This document shows positions 7,474 through 59,134 of a DNA stretch of 64,000 nt, piece by piece. A program made the position numbers and the translations under genes. Within the stretch, counting starts at the first letter, position 1; every line of letters begins with the position of its first letter. The notes beneath the pieces are model-generated. The model saw only the letters and a list, made by a program, of their open reading frames with translations. It was not told the DNA's origin and did no database searches. This stretch comes from Rebecca billardiae RCC1528 (lineage: Eukaryota > Protista > Haptophyta), in contig OZ251224.1 in NCBI GenBank assembly GCA_965240325.2, positions 4,340,001 to 4,404,000 of the forward strand, given 5' to 3'.

Positions 7474-10400
7474 TCAGATCGCGATGGCGGGCAGGTGCGT
7501 GCGCTGCCGCCGCCCCCTGTCGCGCTTGCCCCCGCTGTACCCCTTGCCCGAGGCCGCGTGCAGCTGCGGTGGCGGGGAGGTCCCGTACACGCGCTCGAGG
7601 GGCGGCAGCTGCGGCGGGGGCGAGCCGTTGCGCACCTCCTCCGCCTCGCGCAGCCGCCGCGCCACCTCGGCGCGCCGCCGCTCGCCCGCCAGCCGCTGCT
7701 CCTCGTGCAGCCGCCGCCTCCTCCACTCGACTTTCTCGATGGCCTCCTGCTGCAGCCTGCGCCCACGGCGCGCACGCCAGGGCGCGGCGCGCGGCGGGCG
7801 CGCACCGGGCGGCGCGGCGCGGCGCGGCGCGGCGTGAGCGACTGCGCTGGCGCGGCGCGCGCGCGCGCGGGAGCGCGGGGGCGTGGACGGGCGCGGCGGC
7901 GGCGCGCGCGGCGCTGGTGCGCGCTGCACCTCCGCTGCTGGCGGAACGCCTCCCTCGCGTCCTGGACGGACTGCTCGAGCACGTACTGGCGGCGCGCGAG
8001 GAAGTCCGCCTCCTTCTTGCGCCGCTCCGCCGCCTCCGCCTCCCGCTGCGCCGCGCGCAGCCGCTCGCGCTCGGCGGCGATGCCCGAGCGCTTCTGCCGC
8101 GCGCGTCGGATCGCCGCGTGCTCGCGCGCCAGCCGCTCGCGCTGCAGCTGCTCGACGCGCGCCTGCATCGCGCTCATGCTCGCCTCCCACTCCTCCTCGG
8201 CGCTCATCCCGCGCTCGCGCGGCTGGCGGCTGCGCGCGGCGCGCGGCGCGCGGCGCGGGCGCGCGGGGCCGCGGCGGGCGCGCGCGCTCGGCACACGGGC
8301 GCGCGCGCGCGCCGTGGCACGGCGCGCGGCGCGCGCGCGCGGCATGCGCGGCAGCGCGCGCGCAGCGCACCTGGAGCGATGGCTGGCGTGCGCGCTCTCC
8401 GCGCCGGGCGGGAGCAGGTGCGTCGGCAGACTCCACGCCGCCTCGGGCGGGCCCGGCCGCACGAGCGTCTGACGCGGCGCGCCGCCCGCGGCCGGCGGCG
8501 TCGCGTCCTGTCTCGCCTTGCGCACAGCGCGCAGGAAGCTCTCAGCCGCGCCCGCGCGCTGCCCCGCCGCGCGCGCGTCCAGCCTGGGCCCGTCGTGCGC
8601 GCCCTGCTCGTCGCCGAGCGCGCTGGAGTCGGAGCCCGAGCTGCCGGACTCTGCCCGCTCCTCCGGCTGCGCACGGGGCGCGGGCCCCGCCTCCGACGGC
8701 GCAGGCACCGGCAGCGAGGGCCTGGCCAGCGGGGGCGCGGGCATGCGCGCATGTGCGCGCGCCCAGATGGTGCGCACGCGCGCGTCGAGGGCGGCGGGCT
8801 GCGGGCCCTGCTCGGGGCGCAGCGCGTCGAGGGTCGCGAGCAGCGCCTGCACTTGCGGCACCGCGACGGCGAGCGCGGCGTCACTCACCGCCACCGTGAG
8901 GCCGGCCGCTCCCGGCGCCGCGGGGTCAGCATGGCCGCCCGGGGCGGCGGCGGCGGCGTTCACGGCAGCGGCGGTGGCGGCGGGGTTGACGAGCGCGTCC
9001 GTCGCGTGCCACTCGTGCGCGAGCACGTCGAGCAGCGCCGCGCCCGCGTCGGTGCTCCCCTCCAGCATCTCCTCGGGCACCACCGTGCCCTCGTCCGCCC
9101 AGCGCACCGAGCTGGCGACCGCGGCCGCGGCGTCCGCGGCGCCGCCCCAGTCGCCGCCGGCGCCGGCGCCGGCGTCCGCCTCGGGGCCAAAGTCGAAGGC
9201 GACGCTGAGCTGGGCGGCGGCGGCGAGCGCGGCGAGGCCGGGCGTGCCCGCCGAGCCGGCGGGCGCGGCGGGCGCGCTGCGCTCGCGCAGCCGCACGCTC
9301 ACGCGCGCGCCGGCCGCGCCGCCGCGCACGGCGGCGCGCGCGGCCGCGCCGCGCCGCGCCGCGCCGCGCGCGCGCGCCTGCCGCGCGGCGCTGCTCGTCG
9401 CGAGGCCGACGACGAGCGCGCGCGCGAGCGCGGCGCGCGCGTGCTGCGCCCGCGCCTCGGCCGCCGCGCCGTCGCCGCCCTCCGCCTCCGTGCCGCCGCC
9501 GCCGCCGCCGGAGGCGGAGGCGACGGTGGTGGGCGCGGCCGCGCCCAGCGCGCGCGCGAGGCGCAGCAACTCGAGCGGGCGGCGCGCGGCGCGCATGCGC
9601 GCGGCGCCCTGCAGCCGCCTCGCCGCCGCCTCGCCCACCGCGCCCGCGCGCGTGCGCTGCACCATCCCCGCGCGCGCCGCCAGCCGCCGCCGCGCCGCGC
9701 GCCGCCTCGCCGCCGCCTGGATGGTCCGGATCTGCGCCATGTGCCGCGCCATCGCGTGCTCGCGGTACCGCTGCTGCACGACGCGCGCGGCGCGGGCCTC
9801 GCGGAGGCGCAGCGCCTGCGCGTTGAGCACCGCCTGCTCCGCCTCGGTGCGCTTGCGCTCGCGCCGCTCCTTCGCCTTCTTCGGCGCCACGCTCGCCATC
9901 ACGCCGCCCCTCGAGTTGATGTTGATCACGTGCTGCAGCGCGCGCGCCGCGTACTCGATGGCGCGCTCGTCGGGCGAGGTGTCGAGGACGCGCTGCAGGT
10001 CGGCCTCGACGCCGAGCTTGCGCAGCTTGCGCGCCGCGCCCACCTGGTTCGACATGTTGCGCACGCCCGCCACCACGTACAGCGCCACCGTCGTGTCCGC
10101 CATCGCCTCGGTGTCGCGCAGCAGCTCGGCCATCAGCTCGACGCCGCCCGCGTCGGAGAGCTGGCGGTGGCCGTTGAGGCAGGCGATGTTGGTGAGCGTG
10201 GAGAGGGCGAGCACGACGGGGCGCGACGACGCGGGCTCGCCCGCGCGCCGGTGGTTGCGCACCAGCCGCACCATCAGCGGCGCCACGCGCTCCGCCTCGC
10301 ACAGCTCGAGCGCGCGCGCGCTGTGCTGCTCGCCCGACACCTTGGCGAGGATGAAGGAGAGCTCCTGCAGAGGGCGGCGGTCGGTGACCAGGCCCGTGCC

Positions 10401-12989: not shown

Positions 12990-13808
12990 ATGGCGCCGAT
13001 CGCAAAGTTTGAGACGTCGCTGGGTACGTTCGAGGCGGAGCTCTACCTCGACCAGATGCCGATCACCGTGAGCAGCTTCATGTGCGCGCTCATGCGCCGC
13101 CGCCGCCTTGTGCGCCCGTGCGCGCGTGCCGCGCCGCGCCGGCTCCCGCCGAGCGCGGACGCGGCCCCCGTCACCGACAGCCCCCTTGCCGCTCGCGCCG
13201 CGCCGGGCCCACACGCAGCGACCTCGCGAACACCGGCTTCTACAACGGCGTCCACTTCCACCGCGTGATCAAGGACTTCATGCTGCAGTTCGGCTGCCCG
13301 CACGCCAAGGACGCGAAGAGCTCGCGCGCCGGCACGGGCGGGCCGCCGGGCGGCTCGAGCTTCACCAACCTGAAGACGCAGGAGGTGATCAAGCGCGACC
13401 GCGAGGGCAACATCCCCGACGAGCTCGTCTTCAAGGCCTCCAACGAGCCCGGCACCCTCTCGATGGCCAACACGGGCGCGCCCAACTCGGGCGGCTCGCA
13501 GTTCTTTGTGAACACGGTGCACAACGACTTCCTCGACTGGTTCAGCCCCGGCGAGTCGAAGCACCCGGTGCGCGGCGCGAGGGGCGGGCGGGCGCGGTGG
13601 GGCGGCGCGCGTACCCGCCGGCGCGACCAGCCGGCGCCCGCTCTCAACTCGCGCGCGTGGCCCTGCCCGTGCGGCGGCGGCCCCGCAGGTGTTTGGCAAG
13701 GTGGTGAGCGGGATGGACGTGGTGAAGAAGATCGAGGCGACGCGCACAGACCCCAACGACAACCCGGTCACGCCCGTCAAGATGGTCTCGGTCACGGTGG
13801 CCATGTGA
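12990..13808 (+). CDS. Cyclophilin-type peptidyl-prolyl isomerase; exons 12990-13081, 13219-13567, 13689-13808
   Basis: [38 protein letters not shown]|VFGKVV; two GT-AG introns. Confidence 0.93.
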
Positions 13809-14281
13809 GCGGCGCGCACGGCGCCCACGGCAGCCGTGGGCGACGTCACGCCAGGCTCGCGGTAGCAGATTCGCGTCTCGGTGCTGTGGGCGGCCTGTCG
13901 ACGCGCTGAGTGCGGTCGGATCGCGGATTCTCGGCTGTCAATGATCCACTGCGCGGCGCGCAGAGTCCGAGCCAGCGGCCTCCGGCGGTCTGTGGACAGT
14001 GTGGAGTGTGGTGCCTGCACCCTTCACTGGACCGTGGTTGTAGTTAGTAACACGGCATGAACATGATTGAAGACTCTCGGCGGAGTGTCAGGACGAGGGA
14101 CTTCTGCCAGCACAGCTCGTAACGCAGCTGACCGTGACGGGCTGCGCCGAGGCCGGGGCGGGCACGACTGGCCGCCCCGGACCACAGTCGCCCACCGGAT
14201 TATGCGATGTCCACCGGTGGACGGCGCAGCGCACGCCCTCACTTCGAAAGTCGTCGCCGCACCGATCCGTCCCGCCGCGCC

Positions 14282-16828
14282 ATGGACTCGCTCAGCGACG
14301 CCGACCTCTCCTTCTCCATCGTGTTCGATGATGCGCTGGCCCCGGCCCTCGTGGATCCCGTGTCGTACGAGATCATCCGTAACCCTGTGCGCGCCACGCG
14401 CGCCGGTGAGATCTTCGACGCGGGAGCTCTCGCGCGGTACAACATGGAGAATGACAACGCGGCCGGGATGTCACCCGTGAGTGGCGTGGAGCTCGGGGCC
14501 ATCGTGGCCGCGGACGACGTCGCCAAGCAGCTCGCCGAGCTGCGGCTGCGTTTGCGCGGGAATCTCCCGGCCGCCGCCAGCCCAGGCGCCGCGGGCACAC
14601 CAGGCCAAGCAGCCGCGGCACGCGCTCGCTCGATGGAGGATGTGGCGGGCATCTTCCGTTGCCTCGACAAGATGCGCCCGGTGCTCGGCGACATGCTCGG
14701 CGGGTGGGAGCCGCCGCGCATCGTCGTCGTGGGCTCGACGAGCGTCGGCAAGAGCACGCTGCTCGAGCGCCTCGCGATGATGCCGCTCTTCCCGCGCGAC
14801 CGCACGCTGTGCACGCGCGCGCCCATCCACCTCCGGCTGCGCCGCTGCGCGCCCAAGGACTCGCACGCGCGAATCGCCGTGCTCAACACGAAGACGCGCG
14901 AGGAGCAACCGCCCGGCGGGCGCATGATCGCGATCGACAGCGGCTGGCGGCAGGTGAGCGAGCGGATGGCCGAGATGCTCGCAGATGCCGACGAGCGGGC
15001 GGTGAGCGGCTCTCACGCCATCGTGCTGACCGTGCACCACTCCTGCGCGCCGCTCATCGACCTCGTCGACCTGCCGGGCGTGCAGAGCGACTCCGCCGCC
15101 AGCCGCGAGCTCACCGAGGGGATCGTGCGGGCGCACGTGGGCAAGCGCACGGACGACATGTACCTGCTCGTCGCGAAGTGGGCGACGAACTGCCGGACGA
15201 ACGACGCGGGCGGCCTGCTGTTCCTCGGAGATGGCGCGACCAAGGCGCGCACGGTTGGCGTGCTCACGCACTGCGACAAGGTGCGCGACGCTGAGGACCG
15301 CGAGTGGCTGGGCTCGATCCTGCAGCGCGAGCCGGGCGAGCAGCTGGCCGGCTCGCACGGCATCGCCCGCCTCGAGCCGAATGGCTGGGTGGCCGTCGCC
15401 AGCGCAGAGCGAGCGCCGGTGGCGGCCACACCCGGGCGGCTGCAGCCCACGGCCGGGCTGCAGCGGCTGCTGGGGCTGCGCCGCTCGGAGCTCGAGCACT
15501 TCCGCTCGCACGAGGAGCTGCGCGAGCTGGTCGACGAGGGCAGCGCGACGTGTGACGCGCTCGTGCAGCGGCTCGAGGGCATGTATCTGCGCGTGCTCGA
15601 GGACGAGTGGCTGCCGAAAACGCTCCGCCGGATCAGCGAGCACGCGCGCGAGCTCGAGCGCGAGCTGACGCGGCTGGGGTCGCCCGCGCAGCCGACGGAC
15701 GAGGAGGCGCGCGCCGAGGTGGATCTGCTGCTCGAGCAGGGCTACGGGGAGCTTATGAAGGCATGCTGGCGCGAGGTGTTCGATGTCGTGACGCCCATCA
15801 AGGCGAATGCGCGACATTTTGGCCACCCCTTCCCGAGGCAGACCAACGCCTCCGAGCTGCGTGTCGAGTGCGGCATACTCGAGTGGCAGCTGCGCATGCT
15901 TGCAGACGCGATGCTCGATGACCTGCTCTCGGTCTGCACGCACAGGCTGCGCACACTCCTGCTCTCGTCGCCTGCCGAGAGGCCGACTCCCTTCCGCATC
16001 GAGCGCTTCAAAGCGTACGCCGCGCACATACTGGACGCGCTGCAGCCGGTGGTCTCAGCAGCCGTCGGGCGAGCCCGCGTAGCGTGCGCTGCTGTCCTCA
16101 CGAGTACCTTTGACCTGGTGAGCTCCAGGTTGTTCAACGCCGAATTCGACGTGAGCTCTGAGCGCGTGACTCTGCGCGGCTCCCAGGCTGCCTTCATCGA
16201 CGCCATCCTCACCGCGTGCGCGCTCCACCTCCCATCGCTCGCGGAGCTGCGCAGCGCGCTCACCACGGTGGCGGCGCTGGGCGGGGAGCGCGAGGCCTGC
16301 AGCGCCGAGCGCGCGCGGCTCGAGGAGCAGCGCGCGCTGGCGCACGCGACCGGCGCGGAGCTGTGCGCCGGCGTCTGCCGGGCTGCGCTCCAGCCGCTCT
16401 GCGTGTCGCTCGGGGCGAGCGGTGCCCAGCTGATGCGCCGGCGCGGCATCTCAATCTGGCTGCCGCTGCCGCGCTACTATATGGAGCGAGTGCAGCCTGG
16501 GCTGCTGCTGGTGCTCAAGTTTGGGGCATTGGAGAAGCTCCACCTCACCTGCGGCAGCATCGGCGACCCCGAGGCAGCTGCCATTGCGGCCGCGCTGCGT
16601 GGCAACAGCTCGCTGACGGCGCTCAACCTCTCCAGCAACAAGATCGGTGACCAGGGCGCAGCCGCGATCGTCGACATGCTGCGGCACAACTTCAAGGAAA
16701 ACACCGACTTCGTCCTGAAGACGCTGGATCTGAAGGCCAACCCCATCGGCGACTCGTGCAAGAACAACCTTCGCGAGATCGTGCGCGTGAATTCATCCAA
16801 GCTGCCGCTGGAGCTGCTGCTGGACTGA
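14282..16828 (+). CDS. Dynamin/Mx-family GTPase with N-terminal U-box-like domain and C-terminal RI-type LRRs (intronless)
   Basis: PRIVVVGSTSVGKS (G1), FPRDRTLCTRAP (G2), DLPG (G3), THCD (G4 variant); N-terminal LVDPVSYEIIRNPV...GEIFD...SPVSGVEL; C-terminal LTALNLSSNKIGDQGAAAI and LKTLDLKANPIGD. Confidence 0.88.
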   Translation: MDSLSDADLSFSIVFDDALAPALVDPVSYEIIRNPVRATRAGEIFDAGALARYNMENDNAAGMSPVSGVELGAIVAADDVAKQLAELRLRLRGNLPAAASPGAAGTPGQAAAARARSMEDVAGIFRCLDKMRPVLGDMLGGWEPPRIVVVGSTSVGKSTLLERLAMMPLFPRDRTLCTRAPIHLRLRRCAPKDSHARIAVLNTKTREEQPPGGRMIAIDSGWRQVSERMAEMLADADERAVSGSHAIVLTVHHSCAPLIDLVDLPGVQSDSAASRELTEGIVRAHVGKRTDDMYLLVAKWATNCRTNDAGGLLFLGDGATKARTVGVLTHCDKVRDAEDREWLGSILQREPGEQLAGSHGIARLEPNGWVAVASAERAPVAATPGRLQPTAGLQRLLGLRRSELEHFRSHEELRELVDEGSATCDALVQRLEGMYLRVLEDEWLPKTLRRISEHARELERELTRLGSPAQPTDEEARAEVDLLLEQGYGELMKACWREVFDVVTPIKANARHFGHPFPRQTNASELRVECGILEWQLRMLADAMLDDLLSVCTHRLRTLLLSSPAERPTPFRIERFKAYAAHILDALQPVVSAAVGRARVACAAVLTSTFDLVSSRLFNAEFDVSSERVTLRGSQAAFIDAILTACALHLPSLAELRSALTTVAALGGEREACSAERARLEEQRALAHATGAELCAGVCRAALQPLCVSLGASGAQLMRRRGISIWLPLPRYYMERVQPGLLLVLKFGALEKLHLTCGSIGDPEAAAIAAALRGNSSLTALNLSSNKIGDQGAAAIVDMLRHNFKENTDFVLKTLDLKANPIGDSCKNNLREIVRVNSSKLPLELLLD

Positions 16829-17200: not shown

Positions 17201-17329
<129 letters not shown>

Positions 17330-17617
17330 CAGCTAGCAGACGTCGTACGGTAGTACTTCTTGCGATCATGGATGCATGCACTCAGGATTTTACGTGCTGC
17401 CGATACGATTCCGTCACAGTCCGTACGGTAGCTACTGCCCGGTACGTAAGCCCTGTACAATGCTACAATAGGGACAACTAGAACGGTAGAACTGCTCGTC
17501 GTACAATCGTCGTGGCGCATCAACATGCAGTTGACAGTTCTGACAGTCGTCGGCTGAAGACTCGCAGCTTGCGTGCTGGCGGCTTGTGTGGCCCTGCTTG
17601 GCGGGCGAGGCTCGGCG

Positions 17618-19200
17618 ATGGCGGCGCCCGCCGAGCGCTCGGGGCTCTCGGTCGACGCCTTCGGCGTGCAGGCGACGGCGGCGGTGAGCGGCGGCGTGTC
17701 GTGCGCGGCGGTGAGCGGCGTGAGCGTGTACGTCGGCACCCTCGACGGCGCGCTGCTCCACTTCCACGCGCTACCTGCGACGGGCGGCGGCGCCGATGGC
17801 GGCGGCGGCGGCGGCGGCACCGCCGCTGACGACGGCGGCGAGCTCTCGCTCACGCTGCAGACGCGCCACTCGCTCGGCGTGGGGCGGCGCGCGCTGGAGA
17901 CGCTGGAGGTGATCCCCTCGCTCGGCCTCCTCGTCGTCCTCGCCGACGGCTCCGTCAGCCTGCACGACGCCTCGACGCTGGAGCCGCGCGGCCGGCTCGA
18001 GGGCGCCAAGGGCGCGTCGGCGATGTGCGTGCGCGGCGCGGCGGACGGCACGCACCGCGTGTGCGTGGCGCTGCGCAAGGGCAAGCCGCTCAAGCTCGCG
18101 CTGTACGAGCTCACGCCCGACGCGCTCGGCGCGGCGCGCGGCCGCGTGCAGCCGTACTCGTGCCTCGTAACGCCCGAGGCGGCGCTCGGGCTCGCGTGGG
18201 GCGCGGCGCGGCTGTGCGCCGGGTACGCGGGCGAGTACGCGCTGGTGCACGACACGACGGGCGACGTGGTCGAGCTGCTCGCGCTCGAGGACGGCGAGCC
18301 GCCGCTCATGCTCCCGCTGCCGCGCGACGAGCTCCTCGTCGTCACCGGCCGCGTCGGCACGTTTGTGGACCTGCAGCGCGCGGTGCCGTCCGCGCGCTCG
18401 CCCCTCGCGTGGCCGAGCCGGCCGCGCGCGCTCGCGCACTGCCGGCCGTACGTGTGCGCGCTGGTGCGCGGCGCGGTCGAGGTGCACGTGCTCGGCGAGG
18501 CGCACCACCTGCACGCGCAGCGCGTGCTGCTGGGCGCGCACGTCTCCGGCCTCTTCGCCGGCCAGCTCAGCGCCCAGCTCGGCGGCGGCGGCGTTGCGGC
18601 CGAGGGGCGCGGCGCCGCGGCCGCGGCCGGCGCGCCCGACGGCGGCGGCGCCGCGCGCGCCGCGCGCGACGAGGCGCGCGCGGCCGTCGTGCTGTGCGCC
18701 GCGCGCGACCGGCTGCTCGTGCTGAGGCAGCGCCCGCTGCCCGAGCAGCTCGCGCAGCTCGCGGACGGCGGGCGCGCGGACGGCGCGCTCGAGCTGCTGC
18801 GGCGCAGCCTGGCGCCGCCCGCGCGCGCGCCGGGCGCGGGCGGCGGCGCGGCGGGCGCCGCGCGCGCCGCGGCGCTGCGCGCGGCGGTGCACGCGCGCGC
18901 GGCGCGCGCGGCGCTGCGCACGCGCGCGCTGGCCGCCGCGCCCGCCGCGCTGCACCACCTCTCGCGCTCGCGCGTGCACCCCGCCGCCGTGCTCGCCTTC
19001 TTCCAGCCGTGGGCCGCGGTGCCGCCGGGCGCGTGCGCGCAGGCGGTGGCCGAGGCGGCGCCGCCGCTGCTCGGCAGAGCGCCGGCTGGCTCGGCCCCGC
19101 CGGGCGCGGCCGAGCTGCTGGGCGCGGCCGAGCCCGCCTCCGCCGAGGGCCGCGCCGCGCGGCTGGCGCTGCTCGACTACTTGGCGGCGGTGCTCGCGAA

Positions 19201-19235
<35 letters not shown>

Positions 19236-21255
19236 CGGGCGGCGCGCGCGCGCTCGCGCCGCTGCCGCCGCCGCCGCCGCTGCCGCCGCTCGTGCGGCGC
19301 GCGCTCGAGGCGAGCGTGGTCGTGGCCTCCGCCGAGCTGGGCAGCGCGCACTGGCGCGCGCTGCTCGAGGCGCCGCTGCTCGCCGCGCTGCCGCGCGAGG
19401 GGCTGGCGCGCCTGCGCGCGCGCACGCAGCTGCGCGTGGCAGACGTGGCGGCCGCGCTCAGCGGCGCGGCGCGCGCGCACGCGCTCGCGTGCGCGCACGC
19501 GTGCGCGCCCGACGGCCGGCTCGCCGAGGCGCTGCGCGGCTGGGAGGCGCTGGGCGCGCGCGCGGAGGACGACGCGACGCGCCGCGCCGCGCTGCGCTGC
19601 GCCGTCGAGGTGCTGCGCTGCGCGGAGGGCGAGGGCGGCGCCGAGCTCCTCGGCGCGCACGCCGCGTGGGCGCTGCGCGCGGCGCCGCGCGCGGCGCTGC
19701 CCCTGCTCACGCACCGCCCGGCGCACGCCGCGCCGCTCCGCCCCGAGCGCGCCCTCGCCCTCGCCGAGGCCGCCGGCGCGCCCATCGCCACGCTCTACCT
19801 GCACTGGCTCGTCGCAGACGGCGGCGCAGCCGGGCCGACGCGCGAGGTGGGCGCGCACACGAGGCTGGGCGTGCTGCTCGCGCGCGCGGCGACCGAGGCG
19901 GCCACCGAGGCGGCGACCGAGGCGCGCGGCCGCGGCGGCGGCGCGGCCGACGCGGCGCGCGGCTCGCTGCGCGAGTTCCTCGCGTGGTCGGCGCACTACG
20001 ACGCGGCCGCGCTGCTCGAGGCGCTCGGCGGGTGCGCGCACGCGCACCCGAATGGCTGCCCCCTGTCCGAGGAGGCGGCCATGCTGCATTCGCGGCTGGG
20101 CGCGCACGCGGCCGCGCTGCGCTGCCTTGCGCTCGGCGCGCGCGACGTCGGCGCCGCCCTCGACTACTGCGACGCGCACGCCGCGCGCGGCGGCGGCGCG
20201 GGCTGGGCGCCGCCGCCGCTCGGGCCGCCGAGGCCGGAGCCGGCCGGCGCGGACGGCGCGGACGGCGCGCCGCCGCCGCCGCGGCTCGGCGGCGCGGCGC
20301 CGCCGGCGGCGGGCGCGGACGGCGGCGGCGCGGCGCGCGGGCGCGACGGCGCGACCGCCGCCGCCGCCGCCGGCGGCTGTGTCGACGAGTCCGCGCGGCG
20401 CGAGCTGCTGCTCAGCCTGCTCGCAGAGCTGCTGCGCGCGCGCCAGCCCGACGAGGCGGCGCACCCGCCCACGCCCACGCCCACGCCCGCGCCTCTCGAC
20501 TCCCCCGCCGAGCCGTCGCTCGCGTCGCTCCCGTGGGCGGTGCGCGCGGCCGTGGCCGTGCTCGAGGCGCGGGCCGTCTGCCTGCCGCCCGAGCAGGTGC
20601 TGCCGCTGCTGCCGCCCTCGCTGCCCATCGCCGCGCTGCGCCGCTACCTGCGCGCGGCGCTCGCGCGCGCGGGCGCGGACGCGCGCCGGCTGCAGGCGGC
20701 GCGCGCGCTGCAGCGCGCAGACGCCAACATCGTGCGTGCGCGGCGCGCGGGCGCGCGCTCGCGGCCTCGCGCTCGGCGCGCGGCCGGCCGCGCGCCTGCG
20801 CGGCCGGCGCGCGCCGCCCACCCATCACCGCCGCCGCGCGCCGCCGCGCGCCGCCGCGCCCCCTGCAGGTGCGCGCGCAGCTCGTCGCGTGGCAGCGCGC
20901 GAGCGTGCACGTGGCCGAGGACACGCGCTGCGCGGTGTGCGCGCGCCCTCTCGGCGCCGCGCCGTTCGGCGCGTTCCCCGACGGCGCGCTCGCGCACCTG
21001 GCGTGCTGCGCACCCGCGCACAGCGGCGGCGGTGCGGGCGGCAGCGGCGGCGGTGCGGGCGGCAGCGGTGGCGGCGCGGGTGGCAGCGGCGGCGGTGCGG
21101 GCGGCAGCGGTGGCGGCGCGGGCGGCAGCGGTGGCGGCGCGGGTGGCAGCGGCGGCGGTGCGGGCGGCTCGGCGCTGTACGCCATCTCGCCGCTCAGCGG
21201 CCGCGACTTTCGGAAGCAGCCCGCGACGTCGCCACCCGGGCAGCAGGGCAGCTGA
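17618..21255 (+). CDS. Vps39/TGFBRAP1(Vps3)-like HOPS/CORVET subunit (CNH-like propeller, helical repeat, C-terminal Zn finger); intron 20732-20868
   Basis: VYVGTLDGALL N-terminus, EEAAMLHSRLGAHAAAL...ALDYC, VLPLLPPSLPI...YL; spliced last exon gives VHVAEDTRCAVCARPLG...FPDG..AHLAC. Confidence 0.8.
21022..21168 (+). repeat. 21-bp coding minisatellite encoding (SGGGAGG)n, about 7 copies
   Basis: Repeating AGCGGYGGCGGYGCGGGYGGC units in the last exon of the Vps39-like gene. Confidence 0.9.
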
Positions 21256-22203
21256 ACTGCCGTGTCTCAGACTCAGTCTGCTGAGCCTGAGGTCGTATAG
21301 CATCTAAGATGACAGATATGACATATACTATCAGCAGCAGCCGCAGATATGATATATATGACGATATGACGCGATAACCGTTCTCCGGACCGTCGGGCGG
21401 CGACTGACCGTGCAGTATAGTGTCAGTAGCCGCCCTCTACTCAGCTGCCCATGCGGCGCGGCGCCGAGCGGTTACGGAAGAGTGTGAGAGCAGCCGCTCA
21501 GGTCGGACCAGACCGCGTATATGTGCCAACAGCAGCGCGCGCTGTATAGTGTGAGCGCCGGCGCGATGATGTCTGATGAGCGTGGCCCGTGTGAGCGCGG
21601 CAGCGGCGAGTGAGCGGGCCCGCCACCGCCGCACCGGCGTCGCCGCGGCCGAGTAAGCCGCCGCGCGTCACATCATCCGTCATCATCACGCTGGCGCGCC
21701 GCCCCTCTGCTCGCCTGCCTAAGCTGTGATGTGCGTCATCTCTATTTATTCGGCTTCATTTACGTCGTCACTGTCTCAGTCGTCTGAATGCTAATTATAT
21801 ATCATCATATCATATATATATATTTAACGACGTGGCAGCATCGGACAAGCGTCAGGCTCAAGAGTGCAACAGACACATATAGAATGCGTCCGCGCCTTCC
21901 GACCAGGTCAGACAGTGCGCCACCCGCAGCCCTGCCCCCCTACGGGAGCGGGGCCGGGATGGAGCACCGCCTCGGCCTGGGGCACGCGGCGGCGACGGCA
22001 GATGCCACCGCGGCCGAGCGCCTTCCGGAGCACTTGGATGAGGCATGAGCGGGTGAGGTCGTAGTCGATGTCGCGACCGCCCGCCGACCTAGCGGCGAGC
22101 AGCTCCGGCAAGCGGCAGCCGCGGCTGTCGCCCCCGTGCGCCCGCGTAGGCGCCTGGATGAGGATGACGAGGTCGTAGCGCGCGTCGCCGCGCGCCGGCC
22201 AAG

Positions 22204-22206
<3 letters not shown>

Positions 22207-22246
<40 letters not shown>
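22207..22246. repeat. (AT)20 microsatellite
   Basis: Read directly. Confidence 0.97.
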
Positions 22247-22248
<2 letters not shown>

Positions 22249-22441
22249 TATATATTATATATGTACTATTAATAATAATAAACTGTATAACTGATGACCG
22301 GCTTGCCGCGGCCCCGGGCCTCCCCTCCGGCCCCGCGCGCCGCGGCGCGGCTCACTCACGTACAGACAGCGGTCTGTCGCCTGGCAATCGCCAATCGGTG
22401 TGGCCCGTGGCCGTAGTGGATTACGTAGTAGTCAGTCGGCG

Positions 22442-23380
22442 TCAAGTTTCAGTTTGATGGCCATCGTCATTGGCGTATCCAAGCTGCACGTCCTGCGCGC
22501 GCTCGGCGCACGCTTCGTACAGCACGGCGTGTGCGTCTGCGCCATAGCAGCCCAGCCGGCCGAGCAGCGCGTTGATGCGCAGCACCGTGTCGCGTGTGTG
22601 CCCGTGGCTGTTGCTGTCCGGGATCTTGGCGCGTGTGCGCGCGCGGCGCATGGGCACGGCGTCGGGTGTCGTGACGAGGGCGAGCGCCTGCTTCCGTTCC
22701 TGCGGGTTCCGCCGCGTCACCCAGTCGAGCACCATGTTGAGCTCGCTCGGCGCCATCCCCTCCACGTCCACGACCGCGAACCTGTTGCGCAGCTGCGCGC
22801 TCGAGTTGAAGTGGTCGAGCACCGCGCGCTGGTGGCGCGCCTGCCGCAGCAGCCAGGCCTGGATCGCCGCGTCGGTGTTGTCGACGAAGCCCGACTGCGC
22901 GCCGGGGCACGCGCGGCCCCATGGGCTGCAGTGCCCTTGGCGCCTGTTGCGCTGCGCGTGGTCCGCCTTGGACACGAGCCACGCACGCAGCGCGCGCGTG
23001 TTGAGCACAAACCGCGCGTCTGGGAACTTATTGGCGAGCCACTCGAAGTCAGCGGCGTCGCCGTGGTCCATGTACGCGTCGCGCTTGGCGAACTTGCTCG
23101 CGTCGTGCGCTCTGGTCGCCAGCGCCCAGTTGCCCAGCGGGTTGCACTCGCCGTGGCAGGGCGTGTAGCCGCGCGCTTTCATCGTGTCGCGCAGCGAGCT
23201 CGTGCCCGTCTTCATCGGGCCGATGAAGAAGACCGGGTCGCGCAGCGCGAGCGCGTGGGGCCACGCGCCGAAGAGCGGGAGGACGAGGCTGAGCAGCGCG
23301 CGTGAGCGCGTCGTGCGTCGTCGCCGGTGGTCGTGGCGCTTCGCCGTGCGGCGTGCGCGCTCGCCGCTGAGCCCCGCCAT
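22442..23380 (-). CDS. Sulfotransferase-like P-loop protein with N-terminal hydrophobic anchor
   Basis: VFFIGPMKTGTSSL (5'-PSB loop) and FPDARFVLNTR...AWLVS (3'-PB motif). Confidence 0.8.
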   Translation of the reverse strand: MAGLSGERARRTAKRHDHRRRRTTRSRALLSLVLPLFGAWPHALALRDPVFFIGPMKTGTSSLRDTMKARGYTPCHGECNPLGNWALATRAHDASKFAKRDAYMDHGDAADFEWLANKFPDARFVLNTRALRAWLVSKADHAQRNRRQGHCSPWGRACPGAQSGFVDNTDAAIQAWLLRQARHQRAVLDHFNSSAQLRNRFAVVDVEGMAPSELNMVLDWVTRRNPQERKQALALVTTPDAVPMRRARTRAKIPDSNSHGHTRDTVLRINALLGRLGCYGADAHAVLYEACAERAQDVQLGYANDDGHQTET

Positions 23381-23776
23381 GCTGCGCACCCCTGCGCACA
23401 TGAGAGACCGGGCGGTTGACGGTGTGCTGTACGACCACCCTTGGTTTAGCGCATCAGTGTTTTTTTACCACAGCAAGATGCGGCCCGTAGTCTCAGCCGT
23501 CTCTGGGCTCTGGCAGACTGAGACTGGTGAGCAGGGGTCAACCGAAGCGCCATGGATCCATCAGGAGTTAACAGTTCGTCCGATGACATTATAAGGTATA
23601 GCGCACAAGCTCTGACCGACATCGACATTCCACCCTGAGACCGTCGAGCAGTGTTGCTGTCAGCCTTAACGGAGCGAGTGCACGGCGCAGTGCGCCGGTG
23701 CCCGTTGATATTAGTATTATTATCCGCCCGGGCGGCCGCGGGCAGCGTGACCGTGAGCCGCCGGCGTGCTGGCTGC

Positions 23777-26700
23777 TCAGATGTCGATCTCGCGCTGCAC
23801 GGGCCTCCGGATATGCCGCATCGTCGAGCCCGCCTCGGTCGGCTTGAACGGCGCGAGCTGGCCGTACGGCTTGGGGATGCCCAGGTCGTCCGGGATGTAC
23901 GCGTTGGGCCTCGGCTCTGCGGAGGTCGCAACCATCGCGCCGTCGCGCGCGACGCTGTCGCCCATCCCCGCGGCGGCGGCGGCGGCGGCGGCGACGGTCT
24001 CGTCCGCTTTCCTGTCCAGCGTGAAGGAGTAGCGCTGCCACTCGAGCTCCACCTCGTCCGAGGGCGGCTGTCCCTGCTGCAGCCGCTCGCGCATGCTGCG
24101 CGCGGCGGCGCGTGTCGCGCGGGCGGGCGGCGCGGCGCGGTGCGGTGAGCGCTCGCGCGCGCGCGCGGCGCGGCGCTTGCGCGCGCGGCGCGGCGCTTGC
24201 GCGGGGCCGCGCCCGTCCCGGCGCGCACCCGTCGAGCTCCTGCGAGGCGGCGGTGTTGTCGTGCGTGAGCTTCATCGCGCTCGCCTGGTACATGCTCAGC
24301 TCCGAGACGGCGGCCATCATCTTGCGCGTGGTCGCCTTGAGCCGCGCCTGCACGTCGTTGACGCCCTTGGCGAGCTCGAGCGTGCCGTCTCTGCGCTCGA
24401 TGGCGTGCGCGCGCAGCTTGGCGGCGAGGTTGGTGACCTCCTCGAGGACGAGCTCCTTCTCGAGGAGCTGCTCCTTCTTGTCCGTCAGCCGCTCGTCGAG
24501 CAGCGCGATCTTGGCCGCCAGGTCCTCCGGCTCGGCGTCGCGCCCCTCGAGCCTGCGCCACCGCCGGTCCTGCGTGGGCGCCTCGAGTTTGGACGAGAGC
24601 GCGGCCGTGCGCGCGCGCTCGGCCTCAAGCTCCTCCTGCAGCGCGTGCAGCCGCTCCTCGAACGAGGGCATCTTGGGCACCACCCTGCGCACCGCCTCCA
24701 CCTCGCGCACCAGCCTGGCCAGCTCGAGGTCGAGCACGCGCACCTCCTCGTTGCGCTGCTGCAGCTGCAGCTCGCCGCGCGTGAGCGTGCCCTGCTGCAC
24801 GTTCGACTTCTCGTACAGGATGCACAGCTCGTCGTTGCGGTCGATGAGCTGCACGCCCGTGTAGTTGCGGTCGTCGATCGCGAGCTCGTACTGCCGCTTC
24901 AGCCGCAGCATCTCGCGCTCGATCGTCGAGATGATCGCGTTGAGGTTGCGCACCTCCTCCGCCTGCTGCTTGAGCACGCCCTGCCGCTCCGAGAGCGTGG
25001 CGGCCGCCTTGTTCAGCTCGATGCGCAGCGCGTCGCGCGCGTACGTGGAGGACTGGTGCTCGAGGTGCTCCTTGGAGAAGAACGCGTCCTTCTGCGCGGA
25101 CTCGCGCCGCAGGATGTCCACCTGCAACGCAGCAACGGGGGGAGGGGGGGGAGGGGGAGCGCGGGCTGAGCCGGCCAGCCGGCCAGCCAGCCAGCCGCGC
25201 GCACGCGCGCAGCGCTCTCCCTCTGCGTGTCTCTCTCGCGCGCGCGCGCGGCCCCCGCGCGGCGCGCACCTCGTTCTGCAGGATCTTGATCTTCTCCTTC
25301 ATCTCGGCGAGCGCCTGCGCCGACTCCTGGATCAGGTGCACGTACTTGTTCCGCTCGTTCTTGACGACGTCGTACAGCTTGGAGAACTCGGCCAGCCGCG
25401 TCTTCGTCTCGGACAGCTTCTTCGAGAGGTCGAGCAGCGCGAGCTGGCGCACCTTGAGCTCCTCGTTCGCGTCGCGCGTCTGCTGCAGCGTCTTCGCCAC
25501 CTCGCGGCTCTTCGCCTCGCGCGCGGCGTTCAGCTCGGCGATGCGCGCGTACAGCCCCTTGTCCGCGTCGCCCAGCGCCTTGAGCTCGGCCTGGTGCTCG
25601 CCCACCTCCGCGTGCAGCTGCTGCAGCCAGAGCAGCTGGTCCTGCTCCGAGTCCTCCTGCTTGAGGAAGTTGTTGATGAAGATGTCCACCTCGCGCCGCA
25701 TCTCCTCGATCGCCTCGAGCTGCCGCCGCTTCTCGTCGCGCTTCGAGCCCAGCTGGCGGTGCGCCTCGTCCAGCTGCAGCCGCGCGTGCGGCAGCAGCCC
25801 CTGCGCGCCGTGCATCGACACCTCGGCGCGGCGCGCGCGCTTGAGCGCGACGTTGTACTCCTTCACGCGGCGGTTGAGCCCGTCCTGCTCGCGCTTCAGC
25901 TCGAGCATCACCGCCTTCTGCTCCACCTCGAGCCGCACGCGCTCGGTCAGCGCGCCCTGCGTCTCGGCGCGCGCGAGCTCGATGCGCTTGCTCAGCGAGT
26001 CGATCTCGCGCTGCTTGGTGTCCGCCTGCGCGCGCGAGCGCTCGGCGGCCATCGCGTGCTCGGTGCGCTGCTCGTCGAGCTCCTTCCGCCGGCGCGACTG
26101 CAGCGCCACCTCGCCGTCCAGCATCCCCACCGTCTGCGCCAGCTTGCCCACGTCCGCCTCGACCGCCTGCGCGGCGCCGAGCACCGCGTCCGCCTGCTTC
26201 TTGAGCTTGTCCGGCTCGGAGCGCACCTTGACAAAGGTGGCGTTGAGCGAGCCCTTCTCGGCCTCGGCGTCGTGCTTGGCGGCGCGGCACGCGCTCGTCC
26301 GCTCGTTCAGCTCGCGCCGCTCGCCCTGCAGCCGCGTGAGCGCCGCCTGCTGCCGGTGCAGCTCGGTGCTCGCGTCGCCGACCGCGCGCTCGAGCGCGTC
26401 AATCTGCGGCTGCAGCAGCTCGGCCTGCATGCGCTCGTTGGCGGCGGCCTCGCGCTCGAGCTCGGTCTTCTGCCGCACGAGCGAGTCCGCCTCGAGCTGC
26501 AGGCTCGTCTCCTTCTCCTCGCGCGCCGCGAGCTCCGCCTGCCCCTTGGAGAGCTCGTCGCGCAGCGAGGCGATCGTGTCCGAGTCCTCCTGCGCGCGCG
26601 CCGTCTGCTTGTCGAGCTTCATCTTCTCGGCGAGCAGGTCCTGGTTGAGCTGCTTCGCGCGCTTGAGCAGCGTCTTCTCGTGGTCGTACGTCCGGAGCAC

Positions 26701-26910
26701 CACGTCGTGCAGCTTGGCGTACTTGGCCTTGTGCATCGACGCCTGCGCGTCGGTGAGCATCGACTGCGAGACGAGCGTGTCCAGGTGCGCGTACGCGGGC
26801 GAGTTGGCGATGTTGCTCACGTCGCCGCCGGCGGCGCCGGTGGCGGCGCCGGCCGTCGGCCCGCCACCGCCGGCGCCGCCGCCCGGCGCGCCCCCGCCCG
26901 TCGACGCCAT
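23777..26910 (-). CDS. CCDC146: Flagellar coiled-coil protein CCDC146/MBO2; introns 25122-25269 and 24096-24228
   Basis: Long coiled coil, [30 protein letters not shown], and C-terminal [25 protein letters not shown]...MRHIRRP signature. Confidence 0.88.
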
Positions 26911-52117: not shown

Positions 52118-54006
52118 GGCGCCATATCACAATCACATCGCGTAGTAGTCTCACAGTGCGCTAACACGGGCCGAAAGTTGAATGAGAGGCGTCACGATGG
52201 CTGCCGACGCGCGCGCTGGCCGACCGTCCTCAAGAGGCCGTGATCGGCGGCGTAGACCGCGCGGCGGACCTCGCGAGAGAGCCTAGTCCTAGTCTTCAGC
52301 GGCGCTGATCAACGCCTTCCTCCTCCTTCGCCTCGAGAGCAGCTCCACATGACACGCGCCGAGACGGCCGCAAAGCGACTCCGAAGCGACTCTGCGAGCG
52401 CGCCGCCGGCTGCTCTGAGCATGCGGAGATGGTCAGCTCTTTCGGGTGCGCGGCATGCGCGCTAGATTGCTGACTTTCATGGTACAGCTCGGCTGCTCGA
52501 AACGTGCACGTCTGCTCTCGCGTGCTGGCACGACTCACGCTCTCCAAACTGACCGCCGCTCATGTCAGGGCATGCTGCCGCAAGCTCTCATCCTCAATCG
52601 CATCCCAGCGGCACCCGGGCACAGACGCAGGTGCACATCGACCTGGAGTGGCTGTCGTCGTCGCCACTACCTCTCGGCTGGCGCTCAGCACCAAGTTGCC
52701 GCGTAAATGAACGCGCGCGCGACGGCTTTCTGACCACGGCCCGTGTTGTGCAGGTCGTGGTCACACGTGAGCGCGGCGCTGCGGAGACGGGGCGGGGCCT
52801 CGCTTGTCCGTGACGCTGGCAGCGTGTCACGCGGGCCCACCGCCACGCCGCGCCGCAGGCCGCAACGCGCCGCGCCGTGCTGCGCTGCTCGCAAGTGCTG
52901 CCGTCAGCCAGGTCGGAGTTCGCGGTCGGTCGTCATGATGTCACGGACACGGTCAGCGGCTCCCGCCAGCCGTCGTCGCACCCGACGGCCCGAGCTCAGC
53001 TGAGAGTGAGGCGCGCGTCTACGAAGAGGCGATGCGCAACTACAGCATGCAACAGCGTGGCGTGCCGCGCTCGCGGGCTCCCCAAGCCTGCCGACTCATC
53101 CGCCAGCCAGCCAGCCGCCGACACGACGCGACGAGCTGAGTGGCCGTGGTCCGTGGCCGGTGCCTTCGCCGCGCGCGGGCACGCTGGAATCCATTCGGTC
53201 CGTCAGAGCCGATCATATCACGCGTATATTTTATTAGCAGCAGGCGAGCAGGCCGCTTGATACGACGCGTCTACTCCTCCTCCTTTACGCGCGCATATCA
53301 AGCTACGACCGGGCTATAGCCATAGGCCGCTACTCTGCTGCGAGTCTCAGCTGCGCCTACGCGGACACGGTGCGGTCAGAGCGGACCGTCAGCACACGGT
53401 CACGGGCGCGGTCGGGGCGCCGCAGCCAGCAGGCGACGTCGGCCGCGAAGTCAGCACAGTGATGGTGATGCGCCGAAAACGTGCAAGCGCGCCACGAGGA
53501 GACCCCAGACACATCACGTCAGCCACTCGTCGTGCGTCTTTCGTCGCCTGCTCCACCCAGCCCTCAAGTCAAGCTCAGGTGCCCCTGTGGCGGCAACCCG
53601 ACCCCCTCATGCACTCCTCGGGAATCGGCAGCGCGCGCGTACGCGCGCAGATCATCTCTTTGGCCGTGAGCGCATGGAGGCCGAAAGATACGACTGGATG
53701 GCGAGAACGCGTGCTCTTGACACCTTTGATGCGCAACGCAGGGTGCTCGTGCATCAGCTACGCCCGGTAAGCCGCTCGCACGCCAGCTGGGATGCTCGGG
53801 CTCCTCGCACGGCCGGACTGCTCGAGTGCCCGTCGTGTGCCGTATGCTCAGCAGCACAGCCGACGGGGCACACCTGATGCAGCGTCTTCTGACACTGCGC
53901 GTGTAGTGAGCTCGTACGCCAGCCCACTGCCTGCGCAGCCCGCTTGATCCCGATGATCGAGCCAACACGTGGATCCCATGCGCCTGCGCGAGCGCGGCCG
54001 CGGCGC

Positions 54007-54720
54007 GCCCGCGAATGCAAGGGGGTGCAGCTCGTGAACAGTGGAACGCAGCTGTGATGCACTTGGCCATGCGTGTACACCGAACAATTTCAGCCACGTA
54101 ACTTTCTGCGATGCCCTCCTAGACCCCGCTGTGAGCCGCCGTGTGGCGCGGCGCGCGCGAGGTGCGCGCGCAGGCTGCCGAGCGCCCGGCACGCGCACTC
54201 CGGTCAGAGGCGGACGGAGGCGGCCGCGATGGGAGGCATGACCCGCGAGCCCGAACGAGCGTGAGTGATGCAGAACTCAGCCGCCCCCCGTCTTGGCGCA
54301 CGCCATGCGGCTGGCGTCTCTGCGCGCGCATGTTCGCGTGCGGATTTCAGATGTTCCTGCTCGCGAAGCAACCGCGGGGAGCCCGCGAATTGAGGGGGGG
54401 TGCAGCTCGTCAACGGCGAAACGCAGCTGTGCTACCTTTGATGATGCGTGTACACCGAACAATTTCAGCCACGTAACTTTCTGCGATTCCCTCCTAGACC
54501 CCCTGTCAGCCGCGGTGTGGCGCGGCGCGCGGCCAGGCGATGTCGCAGACTGCTGGCGCACCTGCACGCGCACTCTGGTCAAAGGCGGACGGAGGCGGCC
54601 GCAATGGGAGGCATGACCCGCGAGCCCGAACGAGCGCAGGTGATGCAGAACTCAGCCGCCCCCCGTCTTGGCGCACGCCATGCGGCTGGCGTCGCTGCGC
54701 GCGCGTGTTCGCGCGCGGAT
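54007..54720. repeat. Imperfect tandem duplication, period about 375 bp (copies 54007-54345 and 54381-54720)
   Basis: Both copies start GCCCGCGAAT and share identical blocks such as ATGCGTGTACACCGAACAATTTCAGCCACGTAACTTTCTGCGAT and GTGATGCAGAACTCAGCCGCC...GCGGCTGGCGTC. Confidence 0.95.
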
Positions 54721-56740: not shown

Positions 56741-58833
56741 TCAGAGCAGCAGCGACTTGAGGTACGCGCGCAGCTCCACGCTCTGCGGCACGGCAGCCGG
56801 AGCGGTAGGGGAGGGGCGGGGAGACGCACGCGCCGAGACGCTGAGCACGCACCCCGCACGCGCAGCGGCGCGCGCAGCGGCACGCGCAGCGCTCGGCGGC
56901 GCGTGCCGCGGCGCGTGTGTGCGCGCTGGGTGCGCACACGTTCATCTTGGAGCCGAGCAGCACGGCGGAGCGGCCCTCCACCAGCTTGAGCCGGCGCAGC
57001 TGGTCGCGCACCTCGTCTGCACGCGGCGGGGACGGCGGCCGGGCGGACGGGGCACGCGCGGCGCGCGCAAGGCCCAGGGCGCAGGCAGGGGCGGGCGGGC
57101 GGAGGCGGCGGCAGCGGTTGGCTCGACGACAGCGCACGCGCCGCACACCGGGGGCGCGCGAGGCGCGGGGCAGGCGGCGGGCGGCGCGATGGGCGCGCGC
57201 GTCACGCACCGCGCGTGCGCAGCGCGTCCACCTCCTCCGCCGAGCCCACGCGGCGCAGGCCGCGCAGCCGCTCGAGCTCAGCAGCCGCGCCGCCCCCCTG
57301 CGGCCGCGCTCGCGCGCCGGGCGGCGCGCGCTGCCGGCCGGGCGCGCGCGCTCGGCTGCCGCGCGGCGCGGAGCCGCGAGCGGCGCGCGAGCGCGCCGAC
57401 TTGGGCGCGGGCGCTGCGGGCTCCGACTCGTCCGCCGCGCCGAGCGGCGCGGTGGGGGGCGGCCGTGCGAACGTCCCGTCCTCCTCCTCCTCCTCCTCCT
57501 CCTCCTCCTGCTGCTGCTGCTGCTGCTGAGCAGCAGGGGCGGCAGCGGCAGCAGCAGGGGCGGCAGCGGCCTCTGACGCGGCCTCTGAAGGGGCACCGGC
57601 CGAGGCGGGTGTGCCCGCCGCCGCGCCGCGCGCCGCCCCGCCCCCGCCCCGCGCCCCGCCCGCCGCCTCCGCCGCCTCGAGCTTCGCCTCCGCCGCCTCG
57701 AGCTGTGCCCGCAGCCCCGCGGCCGCCTGCGCGGCAATGTCTCGCTCCCTCTGCGCGCACCCCAGCGCCTCGTCCTGCTGCGCGGAGGCGGAGGCGTAGG
57801 AGGAGACGGCGGACTCGGCCTCGGCGCGCGCGCGCGCCTCGGCGGCGCGCGCGGCCTCCGCCTCGGCGCGCAGGCCGCCCAGCTCCGCCTCCGCCGCGCT
57901 CGCCCGCGCCTCGGCCGCCTGCAGCGACGCGGCGGCCGCGTCGGTGGCCGCCGCCGCCTCGGCCGCCGCCGCCGCCGCGTGCGGCGCCGCCTCGGCCGCG
58001 GCGGCCTCGGCGGCGGCGCAGCGCTTCTGCGCGTCGGCGGCCATGGCCTCCGCCTCCACCGCGCGCGCCTCCGCCACCGCGGCCCGCTCGTCCGCCTTCG
58101 CCGCCTTCGCCGCCGCCTCCGCCGCCTCCGCGGCCGCGGCCGCGTGCCGCGCGCCCGCCGCCTCGGCCGCGGCGACGCGCGCGCCGAGCGCCGCGGCGCT
58201 GGCCTCGGCCTCGGTCGCGCGCGCGCGCGCCTCGGCCGCGCGCGCCTCCGCCTCCGCCTCCGCGCGCCGCGCGCCCTCCTCCGCCGCCGCGTGCTCGCCC
58301 AGCGCGCCGCGCAGCTCGTCGAGGTGCGCGCGCAGCTTGGCCAGCTGGGCCTCGAGGGACGAGCAGCGCTCGGCCGAGCGCGCGAGCTGCGCGCGGAGCT
58401 CGGCGCCGCCGGCCTCCGCGCTCTCGGAGGCGCGCGCGAGCGCGGACTCCGCCGCCTCCGCGCGCGCGCGCGCCGCGCCCAGCTCGCGCTCGAACCGCGC
58501 GACGGTCGACTCGGCCGCGCGCGCGCGCGCGCCGAGCGCGGACGCCTCGCTCGCGTTCAGCGCGCCGGGCTCGGCGCCGGACTGGGAGGTGACGAGCGCG
58601 GCGAGGGGCAGCGCCGCGCCCGCCGCCGCCGCGGCGAGCAGCGACGCCGCCTCGGCGCCCGCGACCATGTGCACCGCCGGCAGCGCGCCGTGCCGCGCGG
58701 GCACGCACGCGCGGGCCAGCCGTGTGCGCCCGCGCGCGCACACCGGCGCGGCGCGCGAGCTCTCGGCGCGGCGCGCGAGCAGCGCGAGCAGCGCGAGCAG
58801 CGCGAGCCGCGAGCCGCCGCGCACGGGCCGCAT
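56741..58833 (-). CDS. Ala/Glu-rich coiled-coil protein with signal peptide and small helical C-terminal domain; introns 57017-57209 and 56783-56939
   Basis: RLALLALLALLARRAES leader; long AEA heptads; two GT-AG introns join ...ALRTR|DEVRDQLRR...SKMN|SVELRAYLKSLLL*. Confidence 0.7.
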
Positions 58834-59134
58834 CTGCGCGCGCCTCGAGGCTCGCCCGCGGGGCCGAGGCTCGTCGGGCCGACCGGCCGTCTCGACCGCC
58901 GCGTCGGCAGCGCGTGCGCTCGTCGGCGTGCGTCGCGACCCTCAACTCTGCAACTCGTCACAGGCGAAAGCCGCGCCAGTGGCGGGAGCCCCGGACACGC
59001 GGGCCCGGGCGGGGGCGCGGGGCCGTCTGCCAACCGAGTGCCAACGGACGGCGAAGAGCTTCAAGCATGGCGGAGTGTGGCGGACGGCATGCACCGTCAA
59101 TCATGGCAAGCGGTTTCAAGCGAGTGGTGGTCAT

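Follow-up and report, generated by a model that had tools for sequence, protein, structure and literature searches.

A diverged U-box–Mx-like GTPase–leucine-rich repeat protein of the haptophyte Rebecca billardiae, probably belonging to a large family of uncharacterised proteins in marine algae and protists

Introduction

Mx proteins and dynamin polymerise through their stalks and dimerise through their G domains in the GTP-bound form, and next to the G domain, the first helix comes together with the last one in a bundle signalling element (BSE). Among the RING and U-box ubiquitin ligases, the paired state is for many members the active one. Here, we describe a gene that joins both kinds of module in a single protein. 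It lies in a 64,000-nt stretch of the genome of Rebecca billardiae RCC1528 (GenBank assembly GCA_965240325.2, contig OZ251224.1, positions 4,340,001 to 4,404,000 of the forward strand), which is referred to as the window in the following and in which positions are counted from the first nucleotide. An initial annotation had read this gene as a fusion of a U-box, a dynamin GTPase and a leucine-rich repeat (LRR) module and had proposed that it encodes an antiviral protein.

Working from the GTPase domain, Langley et al. (2025; PMC11789081) described lineages termed Mx-like, PADS and MADS, to which haptophytes, Diacronema lutheri among them, contribute; their text does not mention a U-box, nor is one mentioned by Sheikh et al. 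(PMC10280142). Among open-access papers, none on a U-box–dynamin fusion was found, and the earlier statement that no characterised protein combines a U-box, a dynamin GTPase and LRRs is in agreement with this literature.

Results

Three modules in one open frame

The gene is very probably a nuclear, single-exon gene of this pavlovophyte haptophyte whose product is a diverged representative of the U-box–Mx-like GTPases, a large and so far uncharacterised family. An open frame of 873 codons extends without interruption from 14207 to 16828 on the plus strand, and its second in-frame ATG at 14282 results in a protein of 848 aa, to which residue numbers refer throughout. The latter start is preferred over the one at 14207, which would add 25 aa, because these 25 preceding codons show a GC content at third positions (GC3) of 0.68, compared with 0.83–0.96 in the segments of the gene, and because in the relatives, the U-box is preceded by about 20 residues. 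Neither the 848-aa nor the 873-aa protein was found on record when looked up as an exact product. Pfam models, profile comparisons and AlphaFold support all three domains, the LRR by sequence, and the single open frame containing Dynamin_N, a U-box recognised by profile and fold, and LRR_6 corroborates the three-module reading of the initial annotation.

The GTPase is matched by Pfam Dynamin_N at residues 147–329 with an E-value of 1.5e-16 (61 bits, cut-off 27). All GTP-binding motifs are present, i.e., G1 (GSTSVGKS, 151–158), G2 in switch I (T178), G3 (DLPG, 263–266) and G4 (THCD, 329–332), and each of them is conserved in 53 to 55 of the 55 aligned relatives. As these motifs are invariant or nearly so, the GTPase looks competent. 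The stalk, on the other hand, is too diverged for the corresponding Pfam models, with Dynamin_M staying below threshold (19 bits, cut-off 28.5) and GED not matching the window protein at all. A PH domain, a proline-rich tail and a transmembrane segment were likewise not found in the protein. An AlphaFold2 model of the full-length protein, built on a 55-row alignment of relatives, has a mean predicted local distance difference test (pLDDT) score of 78.8 and a predicted template modelling score of 0.72, with pLDDT values above 90 across the U-box, the pre-G helix (107–138), the G domain and most of the stalk (390–702). According to Foldseek, this model aligns over 620–760 columns with dynamin 1 and 3, MxA, MxB and Drp1. 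A BSE helix and a helical stalk of dynamin type are predicted by the model, so that the dynamin G domain and helical stalk of the initial annotation are retained.

Scoring of the family profile against all PDB sequences ranks the Mx proteins highest, with 148 bits for Mx2 and 141–145 bits for Mx1 (full-length chains), followed by Dnm1 of C. merolae (133), Vps1 (109), Drp1 (106), Mgm1 (100), dynamin-1 (93) and OPA1 (75–83). The Mx alignments span the G domain and the stalk (residues 150–715). Taken as a ranking of profile scores, this suggests that "Mx-like", the term already chosen in the initial annotation, is the best label among characterised proteins.

At the N-terminus, a profile of three sequences (the window protein and two relatives) matches U-boxes of solved structure, namely, LubX (4.8e-8), PUB12, Prp19 and UBE4B, and a profile of 55 family sequences retrieves LubX at 1e-15, PUB12 at 3e-14 and CHIP at 6e-7. 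Two members of the three-sequence alignment also show a Pfam U-box match, P0003 and, by elimination, the orthologue from Pavlovales sp. CCMP2436. Among the relatives from the word search described below, P0003 carries the Pfam U-box at the equivalent place with an E-value of 8e-12, and the match of P0002 from Tetraselmis is weak. When the N-terminal 113 residues were modelled separately, a hairpin followed by a helix, a strand and another helix at the C-terminus was obtained with pLDDT values of 82–92 over residues 21–90. The top PDB folds found for this model with Foldseek are the U-boxes of LubX, E4B, CHIP, Prp19 and Ufd2, with RING domains next, and the superposition on U-box structures gives target-normalised TM scores of 0.74–0.79 at a root-mean-square deviation of 1.8–2.0 Å. 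The N-terminus is, in the models, a RING-like cross-brace fold devoid of zinc ligands, i.e., a U-box. Compared with most family members, the alignment indicates that the U-box of the window protein is more diverged.

The C-terminus is assigned to the LRRs on sequence evidence. Within the last 142 residues, Pfam LRR_6 is found with an E-value of 8.6e-13 (39–48 bits, cut-off 23.4), and three tandem repeats are readable at about 749–840, in accordance with the roughly three repeats of ribonuclease inhibitor (RI) type stated in the initial annotation. PDB matches of the C-terminal piece are LRR proteins of the ribonuclease inhibitor, NLR and axonemal (DRC5) kinds. Moreover, the repeats align one by one with those of the relatives P0079 and P0053, and the LRR segment is in frame with the rest of the gene at a GC3 of 0.87.

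A widespread family with interchangeable tails

For an exhaustive profile search, a query comprising the U-box, the G domain and the stalk was employed without length filter, with the LRR left out against LRR noise. At E ≤ 1e-3, 7431 representatives were obtained, including dynamins in general, and 340 cluster representatives are found at E ≤ 1e-30. The best 150 matches listed all score above 183 bits, many of them being matched from the U-box onward. Pfam was scanned for 150 sequences (149 of these matches plus the window protein); Dynamin_N is present in all of them and a U-box ahead of the GTPase in 92, and many of the remaining sequences begin inside the profile and look truncated at the N-terminus. 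The modules found at the C-terminus in this set are NHL, WD40, Kelch, filamin, LRR_6 (in three sequences including the window protein), Arm and Ank and, furthermore, pentapeptide repeats, ubiquitin-like domains, TLDc and Neuralized. Among 80 representatives reaching the end of the stalk, 39 continue with an extension of at least 100 residues and 25 with fewer than 50. The order of U-box, GTPase and LRR in the window protein recurs in P0053, a protein of 1021 aa encoded by one open reading frame (ORF) on a 3.7-kb contig, and P0079 from Cymbomonas combines the GTPase with a longer array of LRR_6 repeats, similar in their unit to those of the window protein. In P0191, the stalk is followed by a filamin and NHL tail as in TRIM-NHL proteins. 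Tails consisting of filamin plus NHL, of Armadillo repeats or of a ubiquitin/SUMO-like domain were observed in P0191, P0196, P0197 and P0111.

Besides MMETSP transcriptomes and many contigs from marine metagenomes, the sequences derive from Pavlovales sp. CCMP2436 (two genes), Prymnesium parvum, Tetraselmis striata and Noctiluca scintillans, i.e., from haptophytes, green algae and one dinoflagellate. Cymbomonas tetramitiformis possesses at least four paralogues with differing tails (P0028, P0055, P0064, and P0079), the other three being 38–40% identical to P0028. The count of paralogues and modules suggested in the initial annotation hence gives at least four copies in Cymbomonas and tails varying across the family; elsewhere in the 64-kb window, no paralogue of the gene was found. 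Scanning metagenome contigs for transcripts of the same species did not reveal a relative.

A word search with the window protein returned five relatives, to which a further one with the 55-sequence alignment, covering at most 8000 candidates, contributed nothing new; these searches used full-length queries, whereas Pfam and the PDB were also compared with the U-box and the LRR as separate pieces. The closest relative is P0001 from CCMP2436, being 47–52% identical. Its annotated model begins inside the G domain (locus L001, 5478–7857 of MU631317.1), and the DNA upstream of it at this locus contains, in a frame differing from that of the G-domain ORF, the coding sequence of a U-box-like N-terminus starting with the canonical Cys-Pro. 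This difference might be due to an error in the assembly, to a short intron missed by the annotation or to disruption of the gene. The closest match to the U-box is P0150 (Pavlovales, JGI), whose 90% cluster includes the CCMP2436 paralogue P0153. Judged from these sequences, the core of U-box and GTPase is an old and widespread family and not a recent local shuffle, with the LRR tail alone being variable between lineages.

The locus and its surroundings

The features of the gene are compiled in Table 1. Spurious minus-strand ORFs overlapping it, for example, 14471..16027 (–), are a usual by-product of DNA with 73% GC. With 73.17%, the GC content of the window is close to the 73.25% reported for the genome of Diacronema lutheri (PMC8379373). 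The whole gene has a GC3 of 0.896, and each of its segments lies between 0.83 and 0.96; GC3 and window composition speak for a host-like origin.

Table 1 Features of the U-box–GTPase–LRR gene and its adjoining microsatellite in the window
Feature	Position	Strand	Evidence
Whole coding sequence	14282..16828	+	Single frame, homology from U-box to LRR without stop, GC3 0.896
Diverged U-box, residues ~21–95 (beta-hairpin, helix, short strand, C-terminal helix)	14342..14566	+	Profile, fold match, pLDDT 91–96 in the full-length model
Ala/Pro/Gly-rich flexible linker, residues ~96–106	14567..14599	+	pLDDT below 50 at 98–105
Long pre-G helix, residues 107–138, at the position of the first dynamin/Mx BSE helix	14600..14695	+	Model, conserved in relatives
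Dynamin-superfamily G domain, residues ~145–372	14714..15397	+	Pfam Dynamin_N, G1–G4 motifs, PDB matches Mx1, Mx2, DRP1A
Predicted helical stalk (middle and GED-like), residues ~390–702	15449..16387	+	pLDDT mostly >88, aligns with Mx/dynamin stalks
Stalk–LRR junction, residues ~703–748	16388..16525	+	pLDDT below 50, coding-type GC3
Three RI-type LRRs and short tail, residues ~749–848	16526..16825	+	Pfam LRR_6, PDB LRRs, P0079/P0053 repeats
(AT)62 microsatellite, neighbour of the gene	17203..17326	.	Downstream spacer

Upstream, the gene is flanked by a cyclophilin gene (about 13002–13809) and downstream by a Vps39/Vam6-like gene (17573–21307, plus strand), the latter probably having introns because its CNH domain and its zf-Vps39_C finger are encoded in different frames. 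Both are ordinary housekeeping genes, and the locus is therefore not a defence cluster. The relaxed codon bias pointed out in the initial annotation is real albeit slight, as the effective number of codons is 34 at a GC3 of 0.896 compared with 27 and 0.95–0.99 for the cyclophilin exons; a less highly expressed gene would show such a gap, and for a defence function it is uninformative. In the same vein, the adjoining (AT)62 tract is indeed the longest of its kind in the window and lies outside the gene, but (AT)n/(TA)n microsatellites, perfect or nearly so and 56–124 bp long, occur in three spacers (1825–1917, 17203–17326, and 22207–22262) and look like a recurrent intergenic feature of a genome with 73% GC with nothing particular to the gene under study. 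Absence of introns, formerly taken as a sign of defence, does not serve as such when 45% of the genes in Diacronema lutheri have a single exon (PMC8379373).

Elsewhere in the window, a tandem duplication is found at 53998–54720 (375-bp unit, 1.9 copies, 88% match). Blocks with GC contents of 82–85% (8001–10000, 18001–20000, and 58001–64000) contain GC-rich short tandem repeats and ORFs of more than 1000 aa on both strands, mostly without Pfam match. Further ORFs on the minus strand encode a Sulfotransfer_4 domain (22445–23401) and a CFAP58-like coiled-coil protein (24628–26910).

Viral and defence databases were scanned as well. IMG/VR yielded two weak G-domain matches, both to classical dynamins with Dynamin_N, Dynamin_M, and GED and lacking a U-box, and the fold matches in BFVD are giant-virus dynamins only. 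With PADLOC, a match to LeoA was obtained that is limited to 22 P-loop residues (21 bits), and an NCBIfam scan of the protein gave nothing informative. As IMG/VR and BFVD returned only dynamins, the ideas that the fusion is of viral origin or has a counterpart in viruses were considered and dropped.

Discussion

The explanation that we favour is that the window protein, as a member of the U-box–Mx-like GTPase family, acts as an E3 ubiquitin ligase under the control of self-assembly and nucleotide binding, and we would put the probability of this whole reading at roughly 0.5. As with Mx and dynamin, the stalk together with the G domains in their GTP-bound state would drive self-assembly, and a partner would be picked by the C-terminal module, here the three RI-type LRRs. 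Assembly would then pair the N-terminal U-boxes, a ubiquitin-conjugating enzyme (E2) would be engaged and ubiquitin could be transferred onto the bound partner or onto the assembly itself. Provided that the BSE geometry of Mx and dynamin holds, U-box and C-terminal module would exit the molecule at one end. The succession of sensing, oligomerisation and ubiquitination already put forward in the initial annotation is reasonable from the domain logic; taken by itself, the combination of E3 activity with assembly, drawn by analogy, is still a tentative proposal.

Several observations weigh against this explanation. Although the N-terminal U-box pattern noticed previously holds by family profile and by fold, the N-terminus of the window protein alone does not match Pfam U-box (PF04564) even at E ≤ 10. 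Relative to the family majority, its U-box shows the replacements C25 to D, D41 to A, Y45 to F, R47 to A and W53 to Y as well as one inserted residue, the D at position 25 being also found in 8 of 42 relatives, and from these changes the predicted ligase activity may be reduced or absent. The LRR region (residues 704–848) is modelled with pLDDT values below 50, with only one row of the 55-row alignment other than the window protein having LRR_6, and it comprises only three repeats. Downstream of P0001 in CCMP2436 (L001), an LRR is not detectable, and the LRR tail is therefore not common even within the Pavlovales as far as this assembly shows. In addition, the likeness to Mx comes from ranked profile scores and not from a phylogeny, and the resemblance to TRIM ligases is one that we infer by analogy.

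From the state of its U-box, the gene might alternatively be read as encoding an Mx-like GTPase that bears a small LRR adaptor but lacks ligase activity, the U-box being a relic. The lack of a Pfam match for the single sequence and the loss of several near-invariant family residues would fit, but the fold is predicted at high confidence and matches U-box structures, and a U-box is kept across species (P0150/P0153 in the Pavlovales and the U-box-like N-terminus at L001 of CCMP2436). Furthermore, V27, Y53 and P65, which we take to be E2 contacts as in the CHIP and E4B complexes, are conservative residues in the case of V27 and Y53 and invariant in the family in the case of P65; we regard a relic as improbable. 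That the fusion itself is an artefact, either a chance ORF or an assembly chimera of separate genes, would have to be considered in GC-rich DNA, where long spurious ORFs arise on both strands, such as the one overlapping this gene. However, significant homology over the whole frame, coding-type GC3 in each segment and the independent one-ORF proteins with GTPase and LRR (P0079) or with U-box, GTPase and LRR (P0053) essentially refute it.

With regard to biological function, the protein could be an antiviral restriction factor, in which recognition of a viral component by the LRR is followed by Mx-like polymerisation of the GTPase on it, and the U-box marks the target for degradation. Mx proteins being closest to the family profile among solved structures speaks for this role, as do the variable tails of recognition type and the several diverged paralogues per genome (at least four in Cymbomonas), which resemble innate-immune families, and the reported ancient occurrence of Mx-like lineages, also in haptophytes (PMC11789081). 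On the other side, the neighbours are housekeeping genes, the paralogues of Cymbomonas are with 38–40% identity old and not recently expanded, the PADLOC scan matches the P-loop only and nothing can be derived from codon usage, intron absence or the (AT)n tracts. An antiviral role is unlikely on balance, and, given also the old and widespread core, the description as a shuffled, fast-evolving defence gene is not supported. Equally doubtful is a membrane- or organelle-remodelling dynamin-related protein, whose U-box would tie fission or trafficking to ubiquitin signalling and whose tail would be the adaptor to a compartment. Remodelling of membranes is what most dynamin-superfamily proteins do, and the layout of G domain, BSE and stalk is complete with intact GTPase motifs; yet, a PH domain, a transmembrane segment and a Pfam GED are missing, Dynamin_M is below threshold, the tails (NHL, WD40, Kelch, filamin, and LRR) are of kinds that bind protein or RNA and not lipid, and the taxonomic distribution among the sequences found is patchy.

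A more far-reaching reading extends the assembly-controlled ligase to immunity, with marine protists having a TRIM-like family of innate-immune E3 ligases in which an Mx-like GTPase polymerises on the target, the U-box is switched on by GTP-dependent assembly and the targets are recognised by the interchangeable C-terminal modules (LRR, NHL, WD40, Kelch, and filamin). In this joint form the idea is quite unlikely; if true, principles of the animal Mx proteins and of TRIM5-type ligases would be joined in one ancient protein.

Irrespective of function, the fusion of a dynamin-superfamily GTPase with a U-box seems to be undescribed, yet it occurs frequently among marine algae and protists (92 of the 150 best sequences scanned). 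Should the ligase be controlled by GTPase assembly, nucleotide-driven polymerisation would be coupled to ubiquitination in a new manner, and the interchangeable tails would provide a natural set of programmable ligases. For the early history of Mx-like proteins, the family is relevant as well, since surveys based on the GTPase domain only (PMC11789081) could not see the extra modules. Within the family, the window gene is a fairly diverged member, its U-box being weak and its LRR short.

Comparison with known systems

With MxA/Mx1 and MxB/Mx2, the window protein shares the G domain, the BSE, the four-helix stalk and the lack of a PH domain, whereas Mx proteins have neither a U-box nor a C-terminal repeat module; moreover, the G4 motif reads T-H-C-D instead of the T-K-x-D of dynamin and Mx. 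The U-box ligases CHIP, UBE4B/Ufd2, Prp19, plant PUBs and LubX resemble residues ~21–95 in fold and profile, but none of them is fused to a GTPase. In giant-virus MADS and MidX and in bacterial LeoA of the Eleos defence system, the dynamin-superfamily G domain is the common element; dynamins of viral contigs (IMG/VR), however, have GED and Dynamin_M and no U-box, and the LeoA match covers the P-loop only and not the full length. NLR/STAND receptors have the LRR_6 repeat type and the junction of an NTPase with LRRs in common with the window protein, but their NTPase is NACHT or NB-ARC, while here it is Dynamin_N, and the repeats number only three. In overall organisation, the family is comparable to the TRIM ligases, in which an N-terminal E3 module of RING type is likewise followed by a central self-assembly module and a variable C-terminal recognition module, the filamin and NHL tail even being common to TRIM ligases and P0191. 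In contrast to these, Pfam does not find RING, B-box or coiled coil in the window protein, and the scaffold is a GTPase instead, making the relationship one of analogy and not of membership.

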